Assembly (NCBI RefSeq): GCF_030144855.1
Contig: NC_082719.1
Location: 33,976,001-34,040,000, forward strand
Length of the DNA: 64,000 nucleotides
Origin: Hypanus sabinus
Taxonomy: Eukaryota
Reading direction: 5' to 3'
Positions 8,969-14,576 of the stretch are shown here, piece by piece; within the stretch, counting starts at the first letter, position 1; the number at the start of each line of letters is the position of its first letter. The translations under genes were made by a program, and so were the position numbers. The notes under the pieces are model-generated. The model worked only from the letters and a program-made list of their open reading frames with translations. It was not told the origin of the DNA and did not search any database.

Positions 8969-11900
8969 CTATTGATTTGTATTTTCCATTATCCAATTTC
9001 GAACAGACACTGTCTGCATATATACACCAGGCTGATGAGGTCTTCCACAGCCTCTTCCAAAGGAAACAACTCCTGCCAATAACCATGCCTGAGAACCCTC
9101 ATCTTGGCACAGCAATGGTCCTCCAGAATCTCCCTGGGAAGAAAAGAAAGCAAGGTTGAGGATATGTTACACTTGGAGATCACCATGCAACCCCAACTAT
9201 CCTTACACATCTCAAACCCAAAGTGTTAGTTCCTTTCCATAGATACTTCGGACCGACAAGCCTTTTCTAGTATTTCTATTCATGCAATTCATTATGTTCA
9301 TCTTGGATACCGAGTGCCGTCTTACCAGCAAGTGAAAGGAGAAAATGAATCTCACACTACTCAGCTTTTCTTGAACTACACTCCAAAACTGTGCAACTCA
9401 GTACCTTAAACTACAAGGGATGCAGATTCAGTTGGCAGTGCCAGCTCAAAACCTATTGAACTAACATCTCATCTCTTCACTAAGATCTGTCTTGCATTTT
9501 CATGTTTGCACTTCGAAGTACATTGTATGAAAATTGCTCTATAAATTATTACTACTTCATCTGATACAAGCCTAAGTGGTTATTACACCAGAATTCAGTG
9601 CTTTCCAACTGCCCTGTTGGAAATTGTACCCACTGAGATGCAGAATGCAGCAGTTATTTTGAAAAGGGTTGCACGTGGGATTTTTGAGTTTTTGTATAAT
9701 CACAAGGATAAATTAGCTCTGCTTTAGAAAGCTACAGAAAAACAGCTAAAATGACTGCACTAATCTTAAAAGAACAATTGCTCGTCTCCAATTCTTGGAT
9801 ATACCCAGTGAGTAGTAAATGCACAGAAGGGCATGCACACCTTTCCTTGCTAAAGGATTTAGTGAAGGAGACAGAATGAAAATGTCACATGTCAATTCCA
9901 AAAAGATGAGTGGAAAGCAATCTGTTCAAACTAGCTCCCTACAGTTTGAGCAATGTATTTATAAACAAGCTGCACCATTTCAGTCACTCTACCATCGATT
10001 AAGCCAGCTCCAACATTACAGCCAAGCTATCAGACCCTAATGAAATTGCCACAATTTTAATGATGAGAACTTGATTACTCCACAGTATCCCCATTCATTC
10101 ACCTGCAAAAGCTTGGTCTAATACTGAGTTACCATTTCATGGCAAGTGATTAGATATAATTAACCTGAAGAGCATGGCATCCCACAGAAAAAAACTAATC
10201 AAATAACTCCATACCTGACATGCATCTCTTCCACCTTCAGCCACCCCCGCACAGATCATCTGTTCAGTTATGTTGGGCAGGTAATGCCGACATCGGCTGT
10301 TGCTGAAAACTTCCACTTCAGTCTTCAAAAGACTTCCACTGTCCTCTCCTATTGGCAATGAACAGCACAAAGTTAATATGCAGTCCAAAACAATGGCAAC
10401 ATACGTGAAGTGTCAGTCACCCCTATGCTGCATCACAACACCCTAGATAAATGGCCAAGCATTTTAAACAATCTGCAATTTAAACAATTTTAAAAATCCA
10501 AATGATCTTGCCAGAAAGTTACTTCCCTTAAATATCAGCAATTTTTAAAAAAACTATTCTTTCCAAGCTTGGCTTGTTCTTGTTTTAAACCCAAGACCTA
10601 TACTACCAGAACAGATCATGTAAAAGCTCATCTTAGGTAACCTATGGAAGATGGCTAATTCAACAAGTCTGACCCGTACCATTTTCACTTGTTTTTCCCC
10701 ATCCGACGGTTGTACAATTTCTGCCAGAAATGGATGTTGTGGGTGCAGGTAGACAAGCTGGTTGGACAAAGTCAGTGTATTCAACTGGCTGTGACAGCTG
10801 TAACAGGGCAACGTCATAATTAAAGGACGATGTTGCCTCGGGGTGAACGACCATCTTTGAAATTTTTCGTTTCTGTACACTGCTTGTTGGCTGAGCCAAG
10901 AAATTGATTCCAAGCACTGCAGTCCAGTTCTGTATATCACTAGAATTTAGAGGGAAAGCAAATGTTAGTCTGTGACGATTAAACACAAGGCCTCGCGTAT
11001 CCATCTTTGAATCAATTAAACATTTCCTTAAAATGCAATTAGAATATTTACTAAAGTATTTGCACAAAGTACTTAATTGGCAGAGTGTGGCACTTTATAT
11101 TACACATCTGAAACAGGTTGCCTTCAATATATAATTAAATGTAGCAACAATACAGACATCTCTGCTTCCATGCAATTACAATTTACAGTGCAAGGCAAAA
11201 CAATACTTTACAATAGCTTGCCGTGGGGGAACGTTGCATTTACCTGTCATTGACACAATGTGCAGCTGTTAAAATCCACCTACACGAGATAAGTGTTGCT
11301 CCACAGACGTGTCGGTTGTTCAACTGTATACTGGCTACAAAAGGCCACTCGCCACCATAGGTCTTCAGTCCACCTACAATTCTCTCAGATCGAGTTTTCT
11401 GTTGACCACAACCTGTTCAAAGGAAAAAAAAGTAGATTAATATGCCAAGCCATCAAAGATTTGCCCTCTTGATCTGTTAAAATCACAATTCAAAAGCTTT
11501 GATTCACTTCCTTATCAGGAACTTAACTATTTTCACAAGATGCCAAAACAAAGTACAGTACACGCTAGTTAACTGGGCCATCTGCTAACCAGGGCAGCCG
11601 GTTATTTGGGACAACTCTTAAAGAGCAAAAACAAATCAAGAAAAAAGCTGGGATTCCCCTGTTTATTTGGGACACTATGTTGCTTAATTGGGACAGAAGA
11701 AAATGTGCAAACAGTTTCTAACTAGAATCAGTCATGTGAACTTGTGTGGCTGTTAGACAACACTGTGCTGACAGCAAACAGTTTTTAAAAAACTTTCAGT
11801 TGTATGTGTTTGTGTTCAAAAAGTAGTGACTTTGGTCACTGATAGTTCACAAGAAATAAAGCAGTAAGGCAATCTGAATGCTTGAAACAGCAGTGAGAAA

Positions 11901-14576
11901 ACAGTTCCAGACTTAAGATGCCAGAAGTGGCCAGGAGTGAAAATGAAACAATTTCACTACTTCAGTCAGTTAGGGACTCTGAAGAATGTGAAGGTATCGA
12001 TGATAATCTTGAATGTTACACTGAAAACGAAGATTAAAGGATGTAATTGTCAAAAGCATTATATGAAGGCAGTCCATTATCTGCACTAGGTGTCAGTGCT
12101 GACCTTGTTCACTTACACAGCATACTCGAGATGAATTCCTCCTTTGCTAACTATTAGGAACTGAGTTTCATAGTACTGTAGTAGCATCAGTGGTGTTTCA
12201 ATTTGTCCTGCATTTTATTTAATTATACAAGTTCTTTCTCAGTTAAATGGTAGCTTGACTTTTTTTTTATATATATTTCCATGAAACTTCAGCTAATTGG
12301 GACAGCCACCTCGTTGGGCCAAAGTATACCTGTCCCAATTAACTGGAATCCACTGTATTCCCATGACCCAGCCTGATTAACTCCACCATGGATGATCCCA
12401 AGTCCAGCTGCAGAAGGAGATGGGGCTAGCAACCCCATCCCGTAATAACCCAGAGCTACAGAATTGCCAACAGAAACTCCAAAGGCCTCATCCCTGAGAA
12501 AGGACGCATCTTTGCCGAGAAGATGCATGGCGAAACCACAAGCCCATGGAAGCCAGGAAGATGGAGATGATTAGGACGCAGTCTGTGCAAGCCAAGCACT
12601 AAAGAGGACTCCCCAGGGAAAGTGGAAGAGAGACTGGCCAAAGGATACCTGGTGATGCGACCCTGAAGCTGAAATCAAGAAGATGGACTACACCTGGGGA
12701 CAACTTGAAGACTACAGAAGACTGGTGAGCTGCTGTTGGTAGACTATGCCCCAATAAGGGGTGAAGGGCTTAATTAACTAATCCACTTGGGCTTTTGTGT
12801 TCAAGTACACTGAGTACCAACTACATTTTCTCCTATTACTTCAGAGAACATCACCACTGAACATACTATAATCTGTATTCTACCATTTCGGGTTTTAATC
12901 TGGTAAATTTCTACAGTTCAGCTTTATCACCCTTCTACACGCTTTGCAAAAAAAGCCATTGCATTGAAAAATCAGTTGATACAGAAGTAAATCTAGATTA
13001 TGAGTATTCAGTATCGTTGTGTACAGAACCTTGAATCCAAAGCTATTCGAGTTGCTTTTCAAGTTAAAGCCTCCAGAGGCAGTTTATTTTGAGTCTCATT
13101 TCAAATAATAGCAGCAGGACTATAATAATAGCAGATTTTCTCAATGATTCATTCATTAGGCAATCTAAGAATAATGTGCAGCCAGACAGCACTGTGGCAC
13201 AGCGACTGCCTCACGACTCCAGTAACCCTGGTTCATTCGAACTTCTGGTGCAATATGGTGTTCTCACTCTTTTCCTGACAACATTGTTGTGGTTTAGGTG
13301 CTCTGATGTTTCCTGCTCCTCATCCACCCTCACTTCTCCCTCCCCACTCTCAATTCAAGAACACAAGGGACTGAGGTTCCTTGCCTAAAACGAGGCCAAT
13401 TTATAGTGGCCAAAGGGCACAATCTGGAAAGGAGGTGATGGAAATGTGGGGAGAATAAGAGTTCAGCATAAAGTTGTTGGGTAGTGAGTACTGAAGACTG
13501 AAAGGTCCACCTGCATTCATATTACTTACCACAGGCAGCGTAATCTGATGTTCTGCAAGCCTCATTTTCCATGCATTTGTGAGAGAAGTAAAAGACTGTA
13601 ATATAGAACATTTACAAAGTTACTATACATCGCCAACCAACATTAACACATCTGCACTTATTAAACAAAACTCGAGTCAGTTTAATTATATTTGGCCCAA
13701 TGATAGAAACTCAAAGTGAGATATTCATCATGTTTCATTTACACTCATTTCGACAGAGTTCGTTTCCTAGATAAGATGCTCCTGCATCTATCTATCCCTT
13801 CACCAGAAGGTGGCTGGTTATATTACAGGAGACATTTGGCTAGATCATATCACTAAATTAGTCCAATTCAATGCTCACTCTATTGAACTGAAAGCAAGCG
13901 CAAACCTTCCATTCAGCTGAGTAGCATGTCAAGCGCGCAGTTTTCGAGAGACCCAACACCCGCAAATTTGCATCAAGATCCCAAAGTTACATCAAAAGCA
14001 CAAGAACAAAGAGCCGCAAATCAAAATTTGCACCATAAAAATCAAAATTGACATATACTTCAATAGTCTTTAGGGAGCGTTAGCATGGAAAGAATCTAAC
14101 ACGTCGAGAGGGATGCAGACCCCTTATCAGAACTATTACGAAAGGCATAGTTGAAAGAAGTTTAGCACAAACACGGGATTCTACAGAAGCTGCCAATCTT
14201 GAGCAACACACAAAATGCCACAGCAACTCAGCAAGTAAGGCACGTTTGACTGGCTGAGTTCCTCCAGAATTCTGTGCGTGTTTGAAAGAAGCTTAACGTT
14301 TCATTTACAGACACAAACCGCCTATGGAATAATCAACTTCCTGAGAATTAAAACAATCACTGTCAGGCAAGAGAGATTAATTTAGAAATTCAAATCAAAC
14401 TAGTTGCCGACAATTAAAATGCAAAACCGCTCACCTAATATAAAAGCAGTCAGTGCTGCAGCTATTAAGACAAACAGCGTGGTTGTTGTTATTGCTAGTA
14501 TCTTTAAAAGTCTGTCCGTCGGTATCCGAGTCTTCACTTCTTCGGTCTTGGCCGATTCTACATTCACGTTGCTCAT
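8969..14576 (-). CDS. Stem-less type II transmembrane serine protease (S1A, trypsin-like), copy B, complete; exons 14576-14435, 13595-13530, 11412-11244, 10939-10680, 10348-10215, 9133-8969 (936 nt, 311 aa)
   Basis: All introns are GT-AG with matching phases (1,1,2,1,0). Product [10 protein letters not shown]...[29 protein letters not shown] (TM)...[13 protein letters not shown]|IVGG...TAAHC...NYDVALL...GWG...DACQGDSGGP...[15 protein letters not shown]...NWIMENTNQ*. His/Asp/Ser triad intact, Asp in the S1 pocket. ATG has A at -3. Confidence 0.93.
11556..12355. mobile_element. Non-autonomous Tc1/mariner-pogo (Tigger-like) DNA transposon in intron 2; second copy at 24426-25222
   Basis: TA|CAGTACACGCTAGTTAACTGGG...CCCAATTAACTGGAATCCACTG|TA, i.e. 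degenerate TIRs and a TA TSD. Confidence 0.75.
12520..12778 (+). mobile_element. RTE-clade LINE 3' fragment (copy at ~25390-25645)
   Basis: Degenerate RRWR-x-G...PQGK-x-KR-x-PK-x-TW...KKM-x-YTWGQLE...LCP, typical of the RTE RT C-terminus. Confidence 0.6.

Follow-up and report, generated by a model that had tools for sequence, protein, structure and literature searches.

In a stretch of 64,000 nucleotides of the genome of the stingray Hypanus sabinus (contig NC_082719.1; hereafter called the window), we have analysed a gene on the minus strand, located at positions 14576..8969, that specifies a short serine protease with a predicted membrane anchor. We consider it likely that the product is a functional trypsin-like serine protease of a minimal, type II transmembrane kind, that the gene is one unit of a recently amplified tandem array, and that it belongs to an ancient orthogroup of jawed vertebrates. 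The orthogroup is recognised in sequence by three hallmarks: a predicted signal anchor, a stalk of 29–30 amino acids with the pattern C-x4/5-C-x7/8-C-x-C-G, and an S1 domain with an extra cysteine at about position 49. The gene consists of six exons, and all five introns are of the GT..AG type:

14435..14576, minus strand, exon 1: the ATG, a charged cytoplasmic tail of 25 amino acids and most of the predicted signal-anchor helix, ending at a GTGAGC donor
13530..13595, minus strand, exon 2 (66 nt, phase 1-1): the end of the anchor and the stalk cysteines C55, C61 and C69
11244..11412, minus strand, exon 3: the GCG linker (C71), the activation site R80|I81VGG, C106, the family-specific C113, and H121
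10680..10939, minus strand, exon 4: the triad residue D168, and C188, equivalent to C122 (predicted to tether the stalk)
10215..10348, minus strand, exon 5: C232–C245, and D254, equivalent to Asp189 of the S1 pocket
8969..9133, minus strand, exon 6: GDSGGP (S260), the G216 and G226 equivalents, and the stop codon

The spliced coding sequence counts 936 nt, specifying 311 amino acids and a stop. The start is the first in-frame Met; an in-frame stop occurs 29 codons 5′ of this ATG, with no other ATG in between. The spliced protein is 100% identical to the Hypanus sabinus RefSeq entries XP_059844961.1 and XP_059844964.1 (named “transmembrane protease serine 9-like”), so that the hand-built gene model equals an independent automatic prediction. 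The six-exon model, which had been proposed from the DNA letters alone (the original prediction), is thus correct in its coordinates and its anatomy.

In the protein, the charged tail (residues 1–25; about 23 had been estimated) is followed by an uncharged hydrophobic stretch (residues 26–52), a four-cysteine stalk of 29 amino acids, which is the length originally proposed, the R|IVGG motif and the S1 domain. The catalytic triad (H121, D168, S260) is intact, with D254 in the S1 pocket. All the equivalents of D189, G216 and G226 foreseen in the original prediction are present in the translated sequence, as are its four sequons: NDS (124), NWT (130), NCT (200) and NIT (238). Exons 3–6 match consecutive segments of the Pfam Trypsin profile (1–46, 49–132, 137–177 and 178–220), and the profile matches a 95%-identical ortholog with E=5.9e-65. 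The protein ends (...WIMENTNQ) a few residues past the S1 domain, without a hydrophobic C-terminal tail.

The family was reached via a search with exon 4, which led to a 311-aa protein of Rhinoraja, and the latter was then used as the query. The relatives range in size from 287 to 319 aa and have the same layout. They occur in skates (Rhinoraja, Leucoraja, Amblyraja), in rays (Hemitrygon, 95% identical; Mobula, 86%; Pristis; Narcine), in sharks (Heterodontus, Heptranchias, Scyliorhinus, Cetorhinus, Hemiscyllium, Pristiophorus, Mustelus, Rhincodon) and in a chimaera (Callorhinchus). In bony vertebrates, members were found in Polypterus senegalus (303 aa, named “TMPRSS11D-like”; P0269), in Erpetoichthys (a partial model) and in Latimeria chalumnae (295 and 303 aa, “ST14-like”; P0270 carries the family features). 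The Polypterus, Erpetoichthys and Latimeria members exhibit the anchor, the C-x4/5-C-x7/8-C-x-C-G stalk and R|I[IV]GG. The architecture had been thought to be lineage-specific, a claim that has to be abandoned: the same layout exists throughout Chondrichthyes as well as in Polypterus senegalus and Latimeria chalumnae, and this distribution implies that it predates the split between cartilaginous and bony vertebrates. Searches with the Latimeria query returned no tetrapod, lungfish, gar, sturgeon or teleost member; the matches that follow show at most 45% identity and do not have the family marks.

The automatic names given to the orthologs are inconsistent (TMPRSS9-like, TMPRSS6-like, testisin-like, PRSS27-like, enteropeptidase-like, ST14 homolog, TMPRSS11D-like). 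The stingray protein is not new to the databases, being already an automatic RefSeq prediction; as far as we have seen, the family itself is not described in the literature searched, since full-text searches aimed at this kind of protease found no description of such a family. The original prediction would have fallen with a one-to-one ortholog of an already described gene; the orthologs found are misnamed automatic RefSeq predictions.

The stalk cysteines, C113 and the catalytic triad are invariant in 19 chondrichthyan orthologs (287–319 aa), and they recur in Polypterus P0269 and Latimeria P0270. In 23 of 24 family members, R80|IVGG is conserved, as are C71, which precedes R80 by nine residues, and C188, which occupies the position of C122. 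The extra cysteine (C113 in the stingray), two residues before the conserved Trp51 and corresponding to about position 49 in chymotrypsin, is present in all 27 family proteins and in no other protein among the 444 that we fetched. The ratio of nonsynonymous to synonymous substitution (omega; Nei–Gojobori method, NG86) is 0.44 overall, 0.21 for the stalk, 0.48 for the protease domain, and 0.40 for the tail and anchor. As the most constrained part of the protein, the stalk is more than a spacer.

In the genome of the chimaera Callorhinchus milii (GCA_018977255.1), the last exon of the ortholog (L003:15428-15588) includes a 1-nt frame break near position 15472, which accounts for the truncated, 287-aa RefSeq protein; older UniProt models for the chimaera read through it. 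The break could be either a fault of the assembly or a genuine lesion. A gene for a PI3_PI4_kinase-domain protein (487-aa product; L003:24509-25508) is located some 9 kb downstream of this ortholog; it is the only syntenic neighbour seen, and it could help to trace the locus in other vertebrates. No neighbouring gene is present within 10 kb of the Hemitrygon or Polypterus loci.

After an earlier quick tree, we inferred a careful maximum likelihood phylogeny of 67 S1 domains, in which the family forms one clade (support 100/99). Within this clade, (Latimeria,(Polypterus,Erpetoichthys)) is sister to Chondrichthyes, amongst which the chimaera is basal; the gene tree thus follows the species tree. 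The clade is located outside TMPRSS6, TMPRSS7, both TMPRSS9 domains, TMPRSS11, TMPRSS3/4/13, TMPRSS12/acrosin and prostasin/testisin, and the deeper nodes of the tree have no resolution. Despite its RefSeq name, the stingray protein is not a TMPRSS9 (polyserase-1): it has a single S1 domain and no LDLa module, where TMPRSS9 has an LDLa module followed by tandem S1 domains, and it falls outside the clades of TMPRSS9 domain 1 and domain 2. The nearest solved structures are the catalytic domains of transmembrane serine proteases of type II (TTSPs), i.e., enteropeptidase, hepsin, DESC1, matriptase and TMPRSS11D (38–40% identity), where matriptase is the best Protein Data Bank (PDB) match by sequence. 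By its predicted N-terminal signal anchor, its S1 domain with the triad, its R|IVGG and its tether cysteine, the stingray protein qualifies as a TTSP, albeit one devoid of a stem module. Reviews distinguish four TTSP subgroups (HAT/DESC, hepsin/TMPRSS, matriptase and corin) according to the modules, at least one of SEA, LDLa, SRCR, CUB, MAM or frizzled, that separate the protease from its anchor (PMC10376093). The family of the stingray protein fits none of the four and probably constitutes a fifth, which the model organisms lack.

Another protein, P0079 (773 aa), has an N-terminal anchor, a module-free stalk of about 35 amino acids, “CGC” and two tandem S1 domains, the latter grouping in the tree with an Amblyraja TMPRSS11D-like protein. 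Stem loss may thus have occurred more than once among TTSP-like genes.

The short, stem-less form could conceivably be an annotation artefact, the real transcripts either including stem exons or reading through the array into a polyserase-like multi-protease; RefSeq indeed calls several orthologs “TMPRSS9-like” or “ST14 homolog isoform X2”, the genes are arranged head-to-tail, and TMPRSS9 has tandem protease domains. We hold this to be extremely improbable, as the absence of stem modules claimed originally is borne out by transcripts, genomic DNA and domain searches alike. The Logan contig L001 (1520 nt; run SRR13269312) is a full-length spliced mRNA: it carries a SMART template-switch adapter at its 5′ start and an in-frame stop before the ATG, and it encodes a 306-aa skate relative with its own stop codon and a 3′ untranslated region of about 500 nt. 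While its protein is some 62% identical to that of the stingray (nucleotide identity, 0.725), L001 is collinear with the stingray coding sequence and has no insertion at any exon junction; the extra stem exons that could have overturned the original prediction are thus absent from this cDNA. Some 20 further, independent Logan contigs (1.0–1.5 kb) encode the same 90% cluster of skate proteins. Each gene copy in the array carries its own stop codon, with poly(A) signals downstream of the stop in the copy examined. Pfam searches of the 19 orthologs at E<=10 returned only trypsin-type families, and no SEA, CUB, LDLa, SRCR, MAM or frizzled module. Hidden stem exons were sought and ruled out: the stop-to-stop segments on the minus strand of introns 1 and 2 contain no LDLa- or SRCR-like cysteine patterns, and tblastn of 14 SEA-, LDLa-, SRCR- or CUB-bearing TTSPs against positions 8000–16000 yielded no non-exonic match below E=0.19. 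Moreover, the proteins are uniformly short in about 20 species (295–319 aa if the frameshift-shortened chimaera entry is set aside), and the genes are compact, with the same six exons within 5.5 kb in the chimaera and gene spans of 5.6 kb in Hemitrygon and 5.9 kb in Polypterus.

A similar question concerns the hydrophobic segment, which could be a cleaved signal peptide, in which case the product would be a small secreted protease. In favour of this, the segment is N-terminal and is preceded by only about ten residues in Polypterus and Latimeria. However, in all 24 family members it comprises 25–30 uncharged residues (27 in the stingray), about twice the h-region of a typical signal peptide, with the N-terminal flank more positively charged than the C-terminal flank (positive-inside), in the stingray as in the others. 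In chondrichthyans, a conserved, charged tail of about 25 amino acids precedes it. In the AlphaFold2 (AF2) model of a 95%-identical ortholog, residues 21–50 constitute one continuous, 30-residue helix, and the omega of 0.40 indicates that tail and anchor are under constraint. Secretion is thus very unlikely in our estimation. The data fit an uncleaved type II signal anchor with a cytoplasmic N-terminus, a predicted topology in agreement with the signal anchor of the original prediction, by computational means.

The origin of the stalk is a separate matter, compatible with the minimal transmembrane protease that we favour. The LDLa module consists of six cysteines, with disulfides I–III, II–V and IV–VI, and a calcium-binding D-x-S-D-E cage. 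The family could be a derived member of the LDLa-bearing matriptase/polyserase proteins, whose stalk is the C-terminal half of the last LDLa (CIV, CV and CVI) plus the “xCG” linker, the orphaned CV cysteine having found its rescue in a cysteine newly acquired by the protease domain. Given the LDLa disulfide scheme, such an origin would leave CV (C61) without a partner, and the family-only C113 would be the obvious candidate. A profile of 16 LDLa-plus-linker segments (TMPRSS9/7/6-like) indeed aligns with the stalk from CIV to IVGG with all the cysteines in register, and the CV–CVI spacing is exactly the x8 of LDLa in the chimaera, Latimeria and Polypterus stalks. The boundary of exons 2 and 3, right after the CVI equivalent, corresponds to the LDLa|DCG boundary in a Fulmarus TMPRSS9-like gene, with which the four protease-domain introns coincide as well. 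The best sequence matches outside the family are LDLa-bearing, TMPRSS9/6/7-like proteins (43–44% identity), the PDB match to matriptase points in the same direction, and, among the fetched proteins, all 27 of the family combine the cysteine at ~49 with the truncated stalk, whereas no other has this cysteine.

On the other hand, of the module itself only the CIV–CV–CVI spacing is present; the acidic cage is mostly gone, and Pfam LDLa is absent even at E<=10. Statistical proof by shuffling with fixed cysteines was tried and given up, since the result is not significant (p ~0.06–0.6): the shuffled versions that equalled or exceeded the score of the real stalk numbered 623/1000 for the stingray, 110/2000 for the chimaera, 237/2000 for Latimeria and 403/2000 for Polypterus. 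Furthermore, the tree, with no resolution in its deep nodes, places the family neither inside nor clearly beside the TMPRSS6, 7 and 9 domains, and the intron phases that are conserved here are those of TTSPs at large. We retain the half-module origin as a hypothesis only, reasonable and unproven, and put its chances at slightly below even. It is possible, though on balance doubtful, that the whole represents a fifth, undescribed TTSP subfamily that predates the cartilaginous/bony split, with half an LDLa as its stem, stapled by a disulfide between CV and the cysteine at 49, which survives only in the slowly evolving chondrichthyans, bichirs and the coelacanth and was lost in teleosts and tetrapods.

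The sequence motifs suggest how a minimal type II protease of this kind could work. The long, uncharged N-terminal segment would insert with the N-terminus inside, as an uncleaved anchor, and the ectodomain would be made as a zymogen, to be activated by cleavage after R80 (R|IVGG), a cut that the enzyme might make on its own or that might come from a different trypsin-like protease. The cleaved catalytic domain would stay on its membrane stub via C71–C188, the C1–C122 bond of TTSPs. C61–C113 would probably be, by elimination, a second, family-specific bond, with C55–C69 closing a small loop. The intact triad and the Asp189, Gly216 and Gly226 equivalents predict cleavage after Arg or Lys. With no stem module and a short, disulfide-pinned stalk, the active site would be held within a few nanometres of the bilayer, and the likely substrates would be juxtamembrane sites on neighbouring membrane proteins or on an apposed cell surface. 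As neither SEA autocleavage nor CUB/LDLa docking would take place, regulation and substrate choice would be left to the catalytic domain, its position at the membrane and the conserved cytoplasmic tail.

Positions 1-31827, the first half of the window, are taken up by units that repeat head-to-tail every 12.83 kb or so, are 98–98.9% identical in DNA and carry one gene each; two full gene copies and a partial one are included, and a dead paralog is located further on. The other copies and elements in the window are:

21837..27423, minus strand, second complete copy: exons 27423-27282, 26462-26397, 24282-24114, 23809-23550, 23218-23085 and 22001-21837; coding sequence identical
716..1742, minus strand, partial third copy: exon 1 (1742-1601) and exon 2 (781-716), the remainder lying beyond the start of the window
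42744..49626, minus strand, dead paralog: remnants of exons 1, 4, 5 and 6, with an open reading frame for the reverse transcriptase of a long interspersed nuclear element (LINE) inside (47847-48989, plus strand)
14681..14688, palindrome TGACGTCA with the cAMP response element (CRE) consensus, 105 nt upstream of the ATG; found at the same place in three copies (1847, 14681, 27528)

The two complete copies differ at 0 of 936 exonic positions, at 48 of 4675 intronic positions, and at 90 of 7396 intergenic positions. At a non-coding divergence of about 1.0–1.2% between array units, some ten exonic differences would be expected under neutrality; their absence implies that both complete copies were kept intact. 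This suggests that the array was amplified recently and that its exons are subject to selection or gene conversion. Four such Hypanus genes have RefSeq entries, and the products of two are identical. The palindrome TGACGTCA is perfect and situated in a relatively GC-rich stretch ahead of the ATG of each copy; judged by its sequence, it may be a candidate promoter element.

The dead paralog has stops in the remnants of exons 1, 4 and 6, a frameshift in exon 5, and the LINE insertion. Its nearest relative is the second (“B”) paralog of Pristis (P0160), which implies an older A/B duplication in batoids, the B copy being lost here. The rest of the window, in which no other host gene was seen, contains remnants of LINE reverse transcriptases and endonucleases, which constitute most of the non-array half. 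Such remnants occur at 33800-40700, 47370-48989 and 53540-57650, some with an ALKBH8_N-like Pfam match C-terminal of the reverse transcriptase.

Some observations weigh against a functional protease of ancient standing. At 0.48, the omega of the protease domain is on the high side for a housekeeping enzyme. Individual copies are dispensable, as the Rhinoraja longicauda paralog P0154 has lost the activating Arg and one paralog in the window is dead. Topology, activation and disulfide pairing are predictions, and AF2 confidence in the stalk is low (predicted local distance difference test, pLDDT, ~50–60). The transcript support stems from a skate, and the searches that found no member in tetrapods and teleosts were word-indexed ones of proteins rather than of genomes.

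The activation site of P0154 reads D-G|IFGG instead of R|IVGG. To judge from this motif, P0154 would not be activatable by a trypsin-like cut, and it may be a pseudo-protease or en route to loss. Several features point to birth-and-death evolution, a pattern frequent among proteases of reproduction or defence: omega is moderately high, the gene has been amplified in tandem in both stingray and skates, P0154 lacks the activating Arg, and one paralog is dead.

Both the classification of TTSPs and the explanation of their functions rely on the stem modules, to which control over activation, shedding, inhibitor binding and substrate choice is ascribed. The family described here provides a natural minimal TTSP, a predicted catalytically competent protease on a stalk of 29 amino acids, presumably disulfide-pinned, that has existed since before the cartilaginous/bony split. 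In such a protein, one can examine directly how far a TTSP gets in the absence of a stem, with respect to autoactivation, retention at the surface and juxtamembrane specificity. The family also completes the evolutionary history of TTSPs by a lineage that is missing, according to protein searches, from human, mouse and zebrafish, and exposes the misleading automatic names given to one orthogroup.

Amongst the known systems, the matriptase subgroup (ST14, TMPRSS6, TMPRSS7, TMPRSS9/polyserase-1) shares with the stingray protein the type II anchor, predicted in the latter, a catalytic domain that is 40–44% identical, the “C-x-C-G...R|IVGG” linker and the trypsin-like S1 pocket with Asp189. The exon boundary after the last LDLa cysteine and the four introns of the protease domain coincide too. 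The stingray protein differs in having a single protease domain and no SEA, CUB or complete LDLa; its family has the extra cysteine at ~49, absent from all 245 other S1 domains examined, and stands apart from TMPRSS6, TMPRSS7 and both TMPRSS9 domains in its own well-supported clade. With the HAT/DESC and hepsin/TMPRSS proteins (TMPRSS11D, DESC1, hepsin, TMPRSS2/3/4/13, enteropeptidase), it has in common the catalytic fold (these are the top Foldseek matches, with 36–40% identity and target-normalised TM-scores of 0.82–0.88) and, by prediction, zymogen activation at R|IVGG and disulfide tethering. These proteins have SEA, or SRCR with or without LDLa, between membrane and protease (PMC10376093), whereas the stingray protein has its 29-aa stalk, and the tree separates both groups from it.

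TMPRSS12, prostasin, testisin, PRSS27 and PRSS33 resemble the stingray protein in size (~300–350 aa), in their single S1 domain and in the absence of stem modules, and several skate and shark orthologs carry the RefSeq names “testisin-like” or “serine protease 27-like”. TMPRSS12 was considered as a known stem-less type II protease and rejected, because published work assigns it to type I, with a signal peptide and with its transmembrane region at the C-terminus (PMC7401031), and because it belongs to another clade. Prostasin and testisin, which have a cleaved N-terminal signal peptide, are anchored C-terminally by a hydrophobic or GPI anchor, whereas the stingray protein is predicted to be anchored N-terminally and lacks a hydrophobic C-terminus, ending shortly after its S1 domain, and the two types form separate clades.

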